The notes below the pieces were generated by a model. That model saw nothing but the letters and a program-made list of their open reading frames with translations. It made no database searches and was not told where the DNA came from. This document shows, in pieces, positions 42,178-48,401 of a stretch of DNA of 64,000 nt (its first letter is position 1; the number at the start of each line of letters is the position of its first letter). Origin of the DNA: Rebecca billardiae RCC1528 (Eukaryota > Protista > Haptophyta); NCBI GenBank assembly GCA_965240325.2, contig OZ251224.1:4278001-4342000 (forward strand), read 5' to 3'. The position numbers and the translations under genes were made by a program.

Positions 42178-43527
42178 GGGTGGAATTCCCATTTTCTGGC
42201 GCACTTCCGCACTGGGGAGGCGGAAAAGCGTCATTTAATACGCGAATAAGGCATAATAAATAAGAAAGGGAATAAAGCGCACGCAGTGCGAAGAAATTTT
42301 TCCGGGTGTATCCGCGTAGTTATTATGCGAAGCACCCAATCTTCTGCGAGGCGGCCTGCTTACTGCGCACGCGGCGTCCCGAACACCCTCGGGGCTCAGC
42401 TGCGGCTCGGCCTGCGCACGCTTAGCAAGCTCGCGTGCGGCCTGCACCTTGCCCGCCGCCTCGACTCTCGAGCAAGAGGATCGACGAGTATGAGTGATGT
42501 AGTAAGTAAGCGTGTGCCGCCGAGCTGCCGTCCGGCAGCCACCCGCGACTGCAGCCGCTGGCCGCGGTGCCTGGCCTCGGCGCGGCCCCACAGGCTCAGC
42601 GCTGTGAGCTCCTCCTCCTTCTGCGCTCCTCCTCCAGGCGTTTGGGCCGCCGCCGCCTTGGCCGCCTCGTCCTCGTCGATCAGCTGAACGGCGGGAGTGA
42701 TGTCTCTGCTCAGCTGAGTGTGACGTGACAAGCGAGGCGACGAGCGACGGCAGCCCGGTGACCAAGCCGACGAGCTCATCGTACGAGCCGTCACGCGTGC
42801 GCTCGTGCCGTGTCTGAGCTGGCTCGCGCTCGTACGCCGACCAGGCTTTGCTCGGACTGAACGCGTCTGCTCGGGCGTCCTTGCGTGTGCGCTTGGACGG
42901 CCGCGGGCCGTCATCTGGTCCGACCGCGCGCAGCTCGATCTCGGAAGCGTTGAGCTGCTCCGCGGTTGACTCACCCTCTGCCTCAGGCTCGACCACGGCA
43001 GCAGGCCCCGCAGCAGCCGCCAGATAGCATCGGCAGGGGCCCCTGCGCCACCCGCCGCCGACCGCACATCGGCCAGCTTGCCGCACACGCGCTGGACCAC
43101 GGCCTCGCCGCGCTTGACGCGGATGTGGTGCCAGGTCGTCGTGCCAATCGCTTGGCTATCGACAACGGGCACGGGCACCTCGATCACGACAACGCCTGTC
43201 GCGTAGGCTGTGTAGCGATGTCCGTCCACGACTCCGTCGTGGGTGGACGGCGCACGCCATCGCGGCCGTGGGCGCAAGCGTCTCGTGAATTGTTTTTTTT
43301 AAAATCACTAATTCGCCCAGCCGCTACATCGAACTCGACAACGGTTGCTTTTACACCCGCGATCTTTCGACTGTGCAAATGGGGCGCCGCCCCATGCTCA
43401 AATCCGAAGAGAACGAAGATGTAAAAGTGTCTGGTCCCTAGATACTGTGCTGTCCGGGTCCCGGTCCGGTCAGATCTGAGCAGCCGGATTTTCCGCCCGG
43501 ACAGGCCAGAAAATGGGATTTTCACCC
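42178..43527. mobile_element. Non-autonomous TIR DNA transposon, copy 1 (1350 bp)
   Basis: TIRs gggtggaattcccattttctggc / gccagaaaatgggattttcaccc; 4-bp TSD GATA; near-identical to 62417-63738. Confidence 0.9.
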
Positions 43528-44478
43528 GATATATTCTTTCGTTATTCGATCGATCATATACCGTAGTGCGCGACTATATTATTATATCTCGTTTTTATAT
43601 ACGCGCGCGACAATGCTGCAATATAACTAGCGCACGCAGGACGAAAGTATCATAATCTCATCACTGCTGCTATACGTACTATCTTACTTACCGTGCTCGC
43701 ATCACTAAGTGACTATGAGTATAGCTGCTGATGATGCCAGAGTTTATTTAATTAATACGGCTAGCACTCAATAGCGGCCGAGTAGCCGCACCGTTGACCG
43801 TACAGCGTACTGCTGATATTGATTGATGCCGTCTGTCGGCGGTACGGACGCGGGACGGTCGTAGTCCACTTAGACTGACCCGACTACTACTATTGGCAAC
43901 AGCTAGTACTAGGTAGGGTCCACTACTTCGCGGTAATCTAACTAACAATCTATACTTATTGACTCGATCTCTCCGCGCTAAGCTTACGGAGAATATACGG
44001 ATAGCTCAGCACAGCAGAATAATCATGCATCATAATCGCAGTGTATAGCTAGTACTACGACAGACACTAGACAGTAGCATGCTAGTGCTGCGCGGCCGCG
44101 CGACCGCGCGATGCTAGCCGGCACTCAGACTCAGTGCCGTGCCAGTGCTGCCGCAGTCGGCTTAGGCATCATGGACACTAGTCACTACCAGCCGACTGCG
44201 GGCACTACTATACGGCACTGGGCCAGGCCAGTGGACACGGCACTGAGTGAAAGTCGGCCGCCATCACTCTCGGCCTCGGTCTCGTTCACTCGGAACTGAC
44301 AGTGTAACTCACATGCAAGTCACATGACGCGCGCCGTCAGACGCTGCGTCGTCGTCAGCCGTTGTCAGCGCCGACAGTCTGAGTGTGACAGGACTCCAGA
44401 CAGGAGGCCGTCGTCGTACCAGGCGTCCGACGCCGCGCGATGTCGATCGCGATGCCCTCCCGCACCGCGCCTCCGCCC

Positions 44479-46026
44479 TCAGCCGGACCTGAGCGAGGCG
44501 AGCCGCTCGGCGTGGCTGGGCAGCACCACGCCCGGTTGGTCGTCGTGCAGCAGCGGCAGCGGCGTCAGGTTGACCGCGCAGCAGCCGGAGGCGGCCAGGA
44601 CCTCGCGCGGCGGCGGGCCGGCCTGCTCTGCGGCGTGCATCTCCATCTGCACCGCCATCGCCACGTCCTGCGGCTGCAGCTCGAGCTCCGCCGCGGACTG
44701 CGGCGTGGACGCCAGCACCGCGTCCACGCGGTGCGCCCAGCAGTCGAGCGCGTCCGCGAGCGTCGTGTTGACGTGTCTGTGCAGCAGCTCGAGCAGCTGC
44801 AGCACGACCGCACCCTCGTACCGGCCCTCGAGGCCGACGGACTCGAGCAGGACGAGCATCTGCAGCGCGGCGGTGGGCACGCGCTCCGACGGCGGCGCGC
44901 TGAGCAGCTGGTCGCGCGTGGGCAGCTGCACCTCGAGCAGCTGCGCCGCCCAGTCCTCGCCGTCCGTGCCGTGCGGGCCCGCGCCGTACTCGCCACTCGG
45001 CAGCAGCAGCGCGGTGCGCGCGCGCTTCGCCTCCGAGGCTCGGCGCGGGCCGTTGGCGGCGGTGCCGCCGCCGCCGGCGGCGGAGCCGTTGAGCGCGCGC
45101 GGCCGCTTGCCCAGCCCGCCCGCGCCGCCCACGCGCGGCCCAGACACGCCGCTGCCGCCTCGTTCGCCCTTCACGCCGCCGCCACCGCCGCCGGCCGCGC
45201 CGGCCGCGCCGTCGCCGTTGGCTGCTGCCGCGTGCGCCGCGCTGCCGTGCGGCTGCAGCTGCGCGTGGTACGCGCGCTCGTCCTCGAGCACGCGCTCCCA
45301 CGCGATGCCGCCGTCGAGGCCTGCGACGCCCTCGCGGAGGAGCATCGCCTCGTGCCCCTCGGGGCACTCCTGCAGCTGCGGGCGCGGGGAGGGCGCGCGC
45401 GCGCACGGCCGGCGCGCGCTCGGCCGCTGAGCCTCGGAGCAGCCCGCTGGCGGCCGGCTGTTGGCGCGCGCACGCGGACTCACGGCGGCCGGGAGCGCGA
45501 GGGGCGCGGTGCGCGTCCACGCGTGGCGCGCACCTTCACGCGCCAGTCCTCTCGTCTCGACGCCCACGTCGGCTCGAACGACTCGAGCTTGAGCGCCGTC
45601 TCCAGCATCAGCAGCCGCTTGTTGAGAGCTGCCCGCACCCACGCGGCGCACGCGCACGCGCGCGGCGCGCGCGGGCCGCGCGCGCGAGGCGGGCGCGGGC
45701 GCGTGCGCGTCATGCGGCGCGCTCCACGTCGCACCCGCGCCGCGCTCGCGCCGCACCCGCGAAGTTTGTCGCCTGCTGCACGCTCGTGACCCAGGAGGTG
45801 CGGCGCGGTGTCCACTTCTTCTTGACCGCGTTCCATGGGATGCGCTCCTCGAGGGCTGCGCGCGGCGCGTGTGCGGGCGTGGGCGCGGGTGCGCGGGTGA
45901 GTGGTGCCCGGGCGCCGCTAGAAGGTCGCCTCGCCCCGTCGGCGCCGCGCCCTCACCGAGCAGCCGCGCCTTGACGTCCATGAGCAGGTCAGCTCGTTCT
46001 GACGCGTCCAGGGCCATGCCCGACAT
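44479..46026 (-). CDS. TAF9-like histone-fold protein with N-terminal BPTF/WHIM3-like helical repeats, 4 exons
   Basis: Exons 46026-45957, 45855-45757, 45628-45534, 45375-44479. C-terminus VPTAALQMLVLLESVGLEGRYEGAVVLQLLELLHRH...DVAMAV...PPPREVL...NLTPLP...GVVLP resembles TAF9. Confidence 0.72.
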   Translation of the reverse strand: MSGMALDASERADLLMDVKARLLGEGAAPTGRGDLLAAPGHHSPAHPRPRPHTRRAQPSRSASHGTRSRRSGHRAAPPGSRACSRRQTSRVRRERGAGATWSAPHDAHAPAPASRARPARAARVRVRRVGAGSSQQAAADAGDGAQARVVRADVGVETRGLAREGARHAWTRTAPLALPAAVSPRARANSRPPAGCSEAQRPSARRPCARAPSPRPQLQECPEGHEAMLLREGVAGLDGGIAWERVLEDERAYHAQLQPHGSAAHAAAANGDGAAGAAGGGGGGVKGERGGSGVSGPRVGGAGGLGKRPRALNGSAAGGGGTAANGPRRASEAKRARTALLLPSGEYGAGPHGTDGEDWAAQLLEVQLPTRDQLLSAPPSERVPTAALQMLVLLESVGLEGRYEGAVVLQLLELLHRHVNTTLADALDCWAHRVDAVLASTPQSAAELELQPQDVAMAVQMEMHAAEQAGPPPREVLAASGCCAVNLTPLPLLHDDQPGVVLPSHAERLASLRSG

Positions 46027-46351
46027 GGCGCGCACAGCGGACGGTAGGCGCGCCGAGCGGACGGCTGGTGGGGCACGTGCTTGTGACGCCGAGCGCGCCG
46101 CCTGACGGCCCCGCTGGGTACCACGCGGGCGCGGGGGCGGAGCGACTCCCGCGCCCCTCGATCGAGCACGGTCACCGCCGCTGCCACTGCCAGCGCGAGC
46201 GCAGCCGCCGCAGCTCGACCGGCAGGGGTCGAGAATTGCGGCCGGAAAAATCACGGACTCACAAAACCATCGCGTCACGCGGCTTCTTTTTATTGATCAG
46301 CAATTCATTCGCCCTTTCTCATTATCTCAAGACAGTCGCAACCGTCTCTCG

Positions 46352-47332
46352 TCACCGCAACTTCCTCGCGCTCAGCCCGTACGCGCGCGGCGCGAGCTTC
46401 ACCGAGTCGAAGCCCGCCTCCCTCAGCCGGCTCGTGACCCCCTTGAAGAGCTGCCCGCTCGCCTTGCTCTCCGGATCACCGATGTAGTGGAAGAGGCAGC
46501 CCGCCGGCCGCAGCACGCGGTGCAGCTCCCTGTAGAAGGTGAGCGAGTACAGGTCGCCGGCGATCGCGTTCACCGGCGGGTCGTGCACGACCGCCGAGAA
46601 GCCGCCCGCCGGGAGCGTGGGGAGCAGCTCGGTGGCGTCTCCCACGAGGCGCTCGACGCGCTCGCTCTCGAACAGCTCGCGCGACCACGGGTTCCGCCGC
46701 TGCATCTCGACCATCGCCGGGTCGAGCTCGATGGTCGTCACGCGCTCGACGTGCGGCAGCCGCGCGAGCGCGATCGCCGTGTACCCCAGGCCGGTGCAGA
46801 TGTCGAGCACGCGCCCGCTCGCGCGGCCTTCGCCGAGGGCGCGCACCTTCTCCTCCGTGTCGCGCACCGGGTCCGTGCCCTTCATCCGGTGCATGTTGAA
46901 CCCGGCGAGCACCGCCGTCGGGCAGCCGTCGCCCACAGGCAGCAGCTTGGCGTGCCGGCGCGTCAGATCGGAGAATGCCTGGATCAGGTCCGGCTCGTAG
47001 CCGGGCTCGCACTCCCACGCGCCCTCCTTCTTGGAGGCGGCGATCTCGTCAAGCTCGTCGAACGTCACGCACGGCAACGGCAGCTGCGGGTCGTCCGGCA
47101 GCCCGATGCCCGTCGGGAGCACCACGAGCTGCGGCTGCGCGTGCGCGCCGAGGTCGACAGTGAACGGGCCGTCGACGAGCACGGGCTCCGGCCCCGCGCG
47201 GGCTCGGAGCTGGCTCAGCGCGCGCGCCTCAGACTTGCAGAGCACGAGCATGCGCGCCCGTGCTGGGCTGAGCGTGGCGAGCACACCGAGCACAACGAGC
47301 GTTCCACGCGCCACGTGGACGCGTGCCGCCAT
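46352..47332 (-). CDS. COG2521-like SAM-dependent methyltransferase with signal-peptide leader
   Basis: GFNMHRMKGTDP, VLDICTGLGYTAI, RNPWSRELF, VHDPP...AGDLYS..FYRELHRVL, LFHYIGDP; intronless. Confidence 0.85.
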   Translation of the reverse strand: MAARVHVARGTLVVLGVLATLSPARARMLVLCKSEARALSQLRARAGPEPVLVDGPFTVDLGAHAQPQLVVLPTGIGLPDDPQLPLPCVTFDELDEIAASKKEGAWECEPGYEPDLIQAFSDLTRRHAKLLPVGDGCPTAVLAGFNMHRMKGTDPVRDTEEKVRALGEGRASGRVLDICTGLGYTAIALARLPHVERVTTIELDPAMVEMQRRNPWSRELFESERVERLVGDATELLPTLPAGGFSAVVHDPPVNAIAGDLYSLTFYRELHRVLRPAGCLFHYIGDPESKASGQLFKGVTSRLREAGFDSVKLAPRAYGLSARKLR

Positions 47333-47444
47333 CGTTGCCGACAGACGGTTTGTCGCACTCGGCCGCCCGGAGGCCCTTCCGTGGACGTCGCAAATTTGGG
47401 GCGATGGCCGACTTATACGCCGCTTCGCCGCGCGGGCCGGCAAC

Positions 47445-48401
47445 ATGGCGACGACGATGGCGCTGCGCCTCTTCGGCAGTGTCGTCGGCAGCCTCCCCGC
47501 GCATCCGCACGCGGGTCAGTACCGGCTGCTGGACTCGGGGGGGCTGCGCCGGCTCGAGTCGTTCGACGGCATCGCGATCAGCCGCCCGTGCCCCTCGGCG
47601 ACCTGGGCGCCCGGCCTGCCGGCCGAGCGCTGGCAGCAGGCGCAGCTCGAGTTTGACGCGGCGACGGGCGCGTGGTCGGGGCCGGCCCTGGGTGAGCTGG
47701 ACGTCGATGAGGGCGGCTGGCATCTGGGCGGGCCGGGCTTTGTGCTCGCCCTCCGACCGCGCGCCTCCGGCCAGCTCGGCGCCTTCCCCGAGCAGCGTGA
47801 GAACTGGGAGTGGCTGCGCGCCGTGTGCGGCGCGGCCGACACGGAGCTGCGAGTCCTCAACGCGTTCGCGCACACCGGCGGGAGCTCGCTGGCGTGCGCC
47901 GCCAGCGGGCAGGTGGACGTGACGCACCTGGACGGCTCGAAGCCCGCCATCACGCAGGCGCGCATGAACCAGGAGCTCTCCCGCCTCTCCCACGCCACGC
48001 TGCGCTGGGTGTGCGAGGATGCGATGACGTACCTCGTGCGAGCCGCGCGGCACGGCCACGTCTTCGACGGGCTCATCCTCGACCCGCCCGCGTTCGGGCG
48101 CGGGGGCAAGCGAGGGAAGGACTGGCGCATCGACCGCGACTTCCCGCGCCTCCTCCAGCTCCTGCCGGACCTCCTCTCCGAGCAGCCCTCGTTCGTGCTC
48201 CTCACCGCGCACGACGCCGAGCTGGGGCCGGAGGCGCTGCGAGACGCGCTGGCCCGAGTGCTGGCTGCCGCGCGCGCAGACGGCGGCGAGGTGGAGCATG
48301 GCGAGCTGGTGCTGCGCGCCGACGAGCCGGGGGGCGTCGACCTGCGCATGGGCGCCTTTGCGCGATGGAGCCGTGTGCCCGACGCTGCCGCCGCGCGCTG
48401 A
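47445..48401 (+). CDS. RlmI/YwbD-like (COG1092) SAM-dependent methyltransferase
   Basis: YRLLDSGGLRRLESF, GQLGAFPEQRENWEWL, VLNAFAHTGGSSLA, HLDGSK, LILDPPAFGRG; intronless. Confidence 0.85.
   Translation: MATTMALRLFGSVVGSLPAHPHAGQYRLLDSGGLRRLESFDGIAISRPCPSATWAPGLPAERWQQAQLEFDAATGAWSGPALGELDVDEGGWHLGGPGFVLALRPRASGQLGAFPEQRENWEWLRAVCGAADTELRVLNAFAHTGGSSLACAASGQVDVTHLDGSKPAITQARMNQELSRLSHATLRWVCEDAMTYLVRAARHGHVFDGLILDPPAFGRGGKRGKDWRIDRDFPRLLQLLPDLLSEQPSFVLLTAHDAELGPEALRDALARVLAAARADGGEVEHGELVLRADEPGGVDLRMGAFARWSRVPDAAAAR

Follow-up and report, generated by a model that had tools for sequence, protein, structure and literature searches.

We analysed a 64,000-nucleotide stretch of the genome of the haptophyte Rebecca billardiae RCC1528 (contig OZ251224.1, positions 4,278,001 to 4,342,000 of the forward strand), referred to here as the window. 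Its minus strand carries a four-exon gene that runs from an ATG at 46026 to a TGA at 44481-44479, with canonical GT-AG borders at all introns and a coding sequence that totals 1161 nt (386 codons). The gene encodes a TAF9 protein in which the histone fold is preceded by a Gly/Ala-rich linker and, at the N-terminus, by a module of helical repeats (Table 1). These repeats belong to a previously unnamed 40-residue Trp/Arg helical repeat family of bacteria and eukaryotes, which we define here as W-RR-W. Our confidence in this architecture and in the TAF9 identity of the protein is very high. No other in-frame ATG lies ahead of the start codon in its open frame, and the tail of exon 1 (KARLL) is the start of helix A of the first repeat unit. 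Translated exon by exon, the gene yields the same peptide as an earlier model-made interpretation of the letters alone (the sequence-only reading), with both split codons (G/CC and G/CT) encoding Ala. The coordinates and the four-exon splicing given in that reading proved exact when compared with the minus-strand sequence and with the collinear sequences of relatives.

Table 1. Features of the four-exon TAF9 gene, in window coordinates.
Feature	Position	Strand	Description
Exon 1	45957..46026	-	70 nt; 23 residues and the first base of a split Ala codon
Intron 1	45856..45956	-	101 nt, GTGAGG...GCGCAG, phase 1
Exon 2	45757..45855	-	99 nt; core of repeat unit 1, LEERIPW...KKKW..RR..W
Intron 2	45629..45756	-	128 nt, GTGCGG...GGGCAG, phase 1
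Exon 3	45534..45628	-	95 nt; core of repeat unit 2, LLMLETALKLES....W..RR..W
Intron 3	45376..45533	-	158 nt, GTGCGC...CCGCAG, phase 0
Exon 4	44479..45375	-	897 nt including TGA; end of unit 2, truncated unit 3, linker and TAF9 domain
N-terminal helical repeat module	45256..45975	-	~105 residues, exons 1-4, with three introns inside the range
Gly/Ala-rich low-complexity linker	44896..45240	-	Exon 4 residues 46-160, 47% G+A
Nuclear localisation signal (NLS)-like cluster KRPR	45097..45108	-	Within the conserved motif GLGKRPRAL; kept in P0002, P0005, P0006 and P0011
Second NLS-like cluster KRAR	45016..45027	-	Similar clusters in P0002, P0005 and P0011
TAF9 domain	44497..44886	-	Pfam PF02291; histone fold and PPPRE...PLP C-terminal segment

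Support for the splice model was drawn from relatives, namely orthologous proteins, genomic DNA of Diacronema lutheri and MMETSP transcripts. Similarity searches for the window gene were run with its separate exon products or with full-length orthologues. The only other DNA copy of the locus, Logan contig L001, is genomic. Four orthologues hold the products of the window exons contiguously and collinearly, followed by the TAF9 domain. They are P0005, an MMETSP transcript with a complete open reading frame (ORF) that contains the exon 3/exon 4 junction; P0006 from D. lutheri (KAG8469458.1), which shares 69% identity with the window protein over exon 2; P0009 from Prymnesium parvum (KAL1527773.1); and P0019, which is encoded in a metagenome-assembled genome (MAG) of a Prymnesium species. 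When P0006 is mapped to its own locus (L005), its residues 14-78, which correspond to exons 2 and 3 of the window, lie on one unbroken exon. The D. lutheri gene comprises three exons, its two introns are found at the positions of window introns 1 and 3, and its intron 1 shares the phase of window intron 1. Because the equivalents of exons 2 and 3 are uninterrupted in D. lutheri while the other two introns are matched in position, intron 2 is specific to the lineage of the window.

A second MMETSP-derived protein, P0002 (Transcript_23504), shares 74% identity with exon 4 and likewise contains the exon 3/exon 4 junction. Its residues 1-85 correspond to exons 1 and 2 in a frame shifted by one base, with a retained intron 2 behind them. 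The codons of P0002 residues 9-40 are compatible with the window exon 2 peptide at 31/32 positions, compared with a mean of 9.4 ± 2.4 and a maximum of 19 in 20000 shuffled controls, and residues 3-8 are compatible with the tail of exon 1 and the split Ala, that is, with the exon 1/exon 2 junction. Because of this compatibility, the differences between the window and the organism of P0002 are almost all synonymous in the proposed frame of exon 2.

The locus is GC-rich (62-82% GC across 44000-46500), every frame stays open, and a single 599-codon ORF on the minus strand covers it entirely. Such DNA could give rise to a gene-model artefact, in which the exons for the helices and the TAF9 ORF would come from different transcripts, or the small exons would be open by chance alone. 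Prokaryote-style public gene calls do divide the locus into two proteins, P0001 and P0007, and the public listing of sequencing runs for this organism gave no RNA run. Nevertheless, we regard an artefact as exceedingly improbable. The helical and TAF9 parts are connected in the transcript-derived P0005 and P0002, the annotated Diacronema and Prymnesium proteins share the whole architecture, Diacronema DNA has no break between exons 2 and 3, and exon 2 has diverged from the P0002 transcript only synonymously in its proposed frame. Separate transcripts for the two halves, which the sequence-only reading had named as a finding that would count against it, are refuted by these relatives, in whose full-length proteins, DNA and transcripts both halves are joined.

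Some public entries for this locus and its relatives are affected by unspliced or incomplete processing. P0007 (118 aa; 45480-45836, minus strand) is a prokaryote-style call that reads through intron 2, exon 3 and intron 3, and P0001 (288 aa; 44479-45345, minus strand) has an internal Met of exon 4 as its start; both are products of gene calling that ignored splicing. In the transcript behind P0002, introns 1 and 3 have been removed and intron 2 has apparently been kept, such that its 'complete' ORF has a false N-terminus. Correction of the split calls and of this N-terminus is a practical gain of the present gene model.

The C-terminal half of the protein is a TAF9 domain, as the sequence-only reading had proposed. 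Residues 164-293 of exon 4 match PF02291 (TFIID-31kDa) with 53.6 bits (cut-off 29; E = 3e-14; profile positions 2-115/122), and all full-length orthologues score above the cut-off at 41-103 bits, with 103 bits for the Prymnesium copy and 41-54 for the pavlovophyte copies. In phmmer searches of PDB sequences, the only matches were to TAF9B and TAF9 (human TAF9B 7ktr_E at E = 1.7e-4; TAF9 6f3t_F, 30ff and 6mzc), with E-values from 1.7e-4 to 2.7e-3. The segment PPPRE...N..PLP...LP aligns residue by residue to human TAF9 and TAF9B and is conserved in all orthologues. The window protein and the other pavlovophyte copies carry an insertion of ~13 residues before helix 3. Fold comparison was made on a full-length model of the orthologue P0009, for which TAF9 chains of human and yeast TFIID and SAGA ranked first among solved structures in Foldseek; its match to Drosophila TAFII42 (1taf_A) has a template modelling (TM) score of 0.74 at 2.9 Å. 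TAF9 is a core subunit common to TFIID and SAGA, where it pairs with TAF6. From what is known of the TAF9 family, the TAF9 half of the haptophyte protein would also pair with TAF6, which would place the protein in both complexes. The ~250 residues ahead of the histone fold, which include a folded domain, depart from the canonical TAF9 architecture.

The linker between the two halves has the Gly/Ala-rich composition described in the sequence-only reading. In P0009 it has a predicted local distance difference test (pLDDT) score below 50 and is predicted to be disordered. Both its length and its sequence differ among orthologues, and in Prymnesium it is short and without either basic cluster. The KRPR and KRAR clusters are conserved in pavlovophyte-type proteins and could act as nuclear localisation signals.

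The N-terminal module consists of three 40-residue units (LE...W...W..RR..W), the third of which is truncated after its first helix (...IAWERV). Each unit is laid out as a helix A that ends in LE, a short Trp turn, and a helix B with W..RR..W. The period is exactly 40, with L22/L62, W38/W78, RR41-42/81-82 and W45/W85 in corresponding positions (window numbering), and the profiles of units 1 and 2 align in register (hhalign P = 7.8e-6, probability 84%). The two W-x2-RR-x2-W units recognised from the letters alone are thus real, with a third, truncated unit behind them. AlphaFold2 modelling of the Diacronema module from a 16-row alignment gave a pLDDT of 91.1 and a predicted TM score (pTM) of 0.79, with helices at 2-18, 21-24, 26-40, 45-58, 68-82, 85-98 and 101-122. 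The module of Prymnesium P0009, which is 36% identical, shows the same helices at pLDDT 84-95 within its full-length model. According to these models, the N-terminal module is an autonomous folded domain. The pTM of the full-length P0009 model is only 0.42, and the module and the histone fold are therefore predicted to have no fixed mutual arrangement.

The fusion of the N-module to TAF9 is found in both haptophyte classes, Pavlovophyceae and Prymnesiophyceae, where a search of related algae, proposed as a check in the sequence-only reading, recovered it in Diacronema lutheri, Pavlovales sp. CCMP2436 (a fragment), Prymnesium parvum, a Prymnesium sp. MAG and two MMETSP transcripts. The orthologue entries in databases are unnamed 'hypothetical proteins', and literature searches on TAF9 in haptophytes or Emiliania turned up nothing relevant, in agreement with the remark in the earlier reading that the architecture is not known from described proteins. 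Since the fusion is present in both classes, the protein is probably the main TAF9 of the lineage rather than an extra paralogue. The alternative is a diverged paralogue, as the sequence-only reading had proposed. Such a protein would stand beside a canonical TAF9, comparable to TAF9B, and be specialised for one complex or for a role outside TFIID and SAGA. The low scores of the pavlovophyte TAF9 domains and their insertion before helix 3 would suit such a paralogue. However, on the TAF9 model the Prymnesium orthologue, which has the same N-module, reaches 103 bits, and an insensitive word search with the TAF9 domain as query returned two Prymnesium proteins only, with no haptophyte TAF9 free of the N-module among them. 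An earlier word-index search had been swamped by Gly/Ala words (8000 candidates, 2 matches). According to a survey of TFIID evolution, TAF9 is invariable in structure and its duplication is confined to placental mammals (Antonova et al., PMC6672047); its text makes no mention of haptophytes (PMC6672047). The paralogue explanation was not supported by these data, and we consider it doubtful.

The significant sequence relatives of the module outside TAF9 are bacterial. An exhaustive HMMER search of 1.84 billion representatives, with the N-terminal part of a relative as the query, found 12 proteins at E <= 0.001, comprising haptophyte TAF9 proteins and fragments, the window's own ORFs, P0004, P0012/P0015 and P0003. 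P0004 is a 563-aa protein with a signal peptide and four copies of the three-unit module (phmmer E = 1.1e-10 over 7 stretches), encoded on a contig from Logan SRR22388203 with a prokaryote-style gene context. P0012/P0015 is a 152-aa protein with a signal peptide and three units (E = 3.8e-4), encoded in a Polyangiales MAG (L002/L003 4001-4459). The bacterial and haptophyte modules are collinear and share 24-31% identity, nine invariant columns (E,W,R,W,E,W,R,W,W) and the period of 40. Gene neighbourhoods of the bacterial relatives are of prokaryotic context and otherwise uninformative. Weak Pfam matches of P0004 and P0012 (DUF7580, Tri-helical and DUF6367) were discarded as sub-threshold or without a matched stretch. 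Two further searches with the module, by features in the ESM Atlas and by word index, gave no usable match and the query itself only, respectively.

The remaining protein, P0003 (1052 aa, NACHT/AAA-like with TPRs, on a bacterial contig; E = 3e-22, the lowest of the search), was rejected as a repeat-inflated chance match. Its score derives from ten near-identical TPR repeats, each of which shares 'WAM' and 'DRPDG' with the query, and it illustrates that phmmer scores for short queries are inflated by repeats.

ISWI partner proteins have a helical module made up of DDT, WHIM1, WHIM2 and WHIM3, and the sequence-only reading had likened the W-RR-W repeats to BPTF and WHIM3. We compared the AlphaFold2 model of the module with the 7.7 million cluster representatives of the ESM Atlas fold library. 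The best match was a 120-aa bacterial cluster, mainly cyanobacterial (TM 0.72 by query and 0.75 by target, 1.8 Å over 101 residues). It was followed by a chlorophyte PHD+WSD+WHIM1 cluster (TM 0.71, 2.4 Å, 104 residues) and a streptophyte 'WHIM2 domain-containing' cluster (TM 0.69, 2.5 Å, 103 residues). A 'BPTF factor' fragment was also matched (TM 0.48, 71 residues), and the remaining rows had TM <= 0.55. The Atlas's own ESMFold model of P0006 gave a similar result: the bacterial cluster scored TM 0.74/0.77, the WHIM1/WSD cluster 0.71 and BPTF 0.47. The best eukaryotic fold neighbours of two independent models are therefore clusters annotated as WHIM1/WSD and a BPTF fragment. Because the motif-based call from the letters and an unrelated fold search arrived at the same family, we consider the model-based support for a likeness to WHIM and BPTF to be real but incomplete.

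The explanation that we favour overall, with somewhat better than even confidence, is that the protein is a haptophyte TAF9 to which an N-terminal helical docking domain has been added on a flexible linker. Judged from this anatomy, the domain would act as a tethered docking module that offers haptophyte TFIID and SAGA an extra interaction surface. Its predicted fold would be that of a segment in WHIM1/WSD-type (ISWI-partner) proteins and of small secreted bacterial proteins. The module is near-neutral in charge (pI 5.5-8.9), which argues weakly against DNA binding, and for this reason the domain would more likely bind a protein than bind DNA directly. The conserved Arg and Glu residues could equally well form salt bridges inside the module or a surface for DNA binding. 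For the docking partner, an ISWI-type remodeller heads the list of candidates but is unproven.

Several results weigh against this interpretation. The significant sequence relatives outside TAF9 are extracytoplasmic bacterial proteins. No match to DDT (PF02791), WHIM1 (PF15612), WSD/WHIM2 (PF15613) or WHIM3 (PF15614) was found in Pfam scans at E up to 10 for exon pieces and up to 1 for full-length orthologues, scans in which HMMER filters drop very weak matches; single exons and pieces of the N-module gave nothing relevant in Pfam at E up to 10. Nor did PDB sequences yield anything relevant to profiles of the module (two alignments) or of a single unit, which gave only chance-level matches (RbfA at E = 0.26, striatin and CedA). 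Searches of solved structures with Foldseek and VIA-align returned generic helical matches, and Ioc3 was not among the top matches. As for the Atlas comparison, its rows give no matched segment of the 720-aa WHIM-bearing proteins, and both sides of it are predicted models. A second canonical TAF9 was looked for only by the insensitive word search, in which none turned up, and the public run listing holds no RNA from this organism. A designed filament (the best structural match, Z 7.6), the Lon N-domain and coronavirus nsp7 were dismissed because they fall below the background that the tool states for helical models.

A more specific possibility, which takes up in full the link to an ISWI-type remodeller suggested in the sequence-only reading, is that the N-module is genuinely homologous to WHIM2/WHIM3 (WSD-type), binds HAND-SANT-SLIDE of ISWI or linker DNA and so couples TFIID and SAGA to nucleosome spacing at promoters. 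The likeness to WHIM was predicted from the motif and then recovered independently in the fold searches, and WSD-only proteins without DDT can bind ISWI (PMC11789628). In Pfam, WSD spans 65 residues that correspond to WHIM2 and half of WHIM3, and it bears a GxD signature (PMC11789628). This signature is not conserved in the haptophyte module, with GLD only in the window protein and P0002 and SLE, TFA, ELE or EFA elsewhere. The module also lacks profile-level similarity to any WHIM, WSD or DDT model, and Ioc3 was not matched among solved structures. DDT and WHIM1 contact the SLIDE tip of ISWI together with WHIM2 (PMC12093815), and both are absent here. Furthermore, the module is not basic, and its closest sequence relatives are secreted bacterial proteins. 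The likeness to BPTF and WHIM put forward in the sequence-only reading thus has partial support at the level of predicted fold (Atlas TM 0.69-0.71 with two models), but none in Pfam or PDB profiles, in GxD or against the solved structure of Ioc3. We judge true WHIM2/WHIM3 homology with this function to be unlikely. Equally, there is little to suggest that a minimal module of the WHIM2/WHIM3 type docks an ISWI remodeller or linker DNA onto TFIID and SAGA, and binding of ISWI by the N-domain is improbable when taken by itself. Shared ancestry of the N-domain with WHIM2/WHIM3 is easier to entertain, and we would rate it just short of an even chance.

Alternatively, the N-module could be unconnected to WHIM and represent a generic helical repeat of a Trp-zipped kind that may have come from bacteria, with its likeness to WHIM a convergence on a three-hairpin bundle. 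Its role would then be self-association, shielding of the unpaired histone fold before TAF6 is bound, or an extra contact within a haptophyte complex. The secretion of the bacterial relatives favours a generic scaffold over a chromatin-specific module: P0004 and P0012 are the only significant relatives outside TAF9, and both have signal peptides and a prokaryotic context. The best fold match is the 120-aa bacterial cluster at 1.8 Å, the invariants shared with the bacterial proteins are the core Trp and the Arg/Glu pairs, and no WHIM profile signal is seen. On the other hand, there is a clear TM gap between the WHIM-annotated clusters (0.69-0.71) and other helical proteins (<= 0.55) among the Atlas representatives, the nuclear chromatin setting of TAF9 suits a WHIM-type relation, and E-values of short repeat queries can be inflated, as with the spurious TPR match of P0003. 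We consider a generic repeat to be a serious possibility, if less than probable.

A folded extra domain on TAF9 that is conserved across an algal phylum contradicts the picture of TAF9 as structurally invariable (PMC6672047). It gives two central transcription complexes a surface specific to this lineage, in algae of ecological importance such as Prymnesium and Pavlovales. If the fold likeness to WHIM reflects function, there would be a direct link from the basal transcription machinery to nucleosome remodelling. Were the docking of ISWI through a WHIM-type module true, promoter recognition and nucleosome spacing would be hard-wired together in the haptophyte phylum, and the occurrence of this fold among secreted bacterial proteins would suggest that the WHIM helical repeat arose in prokaryotes.

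The upstream neighbour of the gene (46352-47446, minus strand) encodes a 364-aa class I S-adenosylmethionine-dependent methyltransferase (Methyltransf_25/11, with a weaker spermine-synthase-like match). Its stop codon lies 325 nt from the start codon of the TAF9 gene, so the TAF9 promoter must sit within this spacer. Just downstream of the gene, GC content falls to ~45% (window 43500-44000), compared with 62-82% around it. This low-GC stretch downstream of the stop codon contains no direct repeats and one weak 14-nt inverted repeat (43445-43509), and is probably a 3' untranslated region or an intergenic spacer. At the Diacronema locus (L005 5001-6450; JAGTXO010000002.1), the neighbouring genes are two unnamed genes, a glycosyltransferase and a Na/H exchanger. 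The neighbours differ between the two loci, which show no synteny.

Compared with known systems, the haptophyte module resembles the bacterial stand-alone W-RR-W proteins in its 40-residue unit, which occurs in threes, and in its invariant E/W/R/W positions. The bacterial proteins differ in having signal peptides, no histone fold and a prokaryotic gene context.

The module also has features in common with the DDT-WHIM module of BPTF/NURF301, BAZ1A/ACF1, BAZ1B/WSTF, Ioc3, Itc1 and plant DDT proteins. Both are all-helical with conserved Trp and basic residues, both have LE-type helix ends, and both belong to a nuclear chromatin or transcription setting. Unlike the DDT-WHIM module, which is part of large multidomain remodeller subunits, the haptophyte module repeats regularly, in three units of 40 residues, and sits at the N-terminus of a small protein with a histone fold, without DDT or WHIM1. 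Judged on its sequence, the haptophyte protein falls outside the DDT-WHIM family on every criterion that could be tested.

A precedent for a minimal, distant WSD-like helical module without DDT is provided by ICOPa and ICOPb of Paramecium, which have a distant WSD motif and neither DDT nor any other domain, bind ISWI1 directly, and can dispense with GxD (PMC11789628). ICOPs were tied to WSD by HHpred with 91.7% probability (PMC11789628), whereas the haptophyte module has no profile link to WSD. Binding of ICOPs to ISWI has been demonstrated, while for the haptophyte module it is a conjecture. ICOPs have no histone fold and are not subunits of TFIID or SAGA.

With TAF9 and TAF9B, the window protein shares the histone fold and the TAF9-specific C-terminal segment. 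In canonical TAF9 the histone fold comes at the start (human residues ~10-109 of 264), whereas in the haptophyte form ~250 residues come first, with a 105-residue folded repeat domain and a long low-complexity linker in front of the fold.

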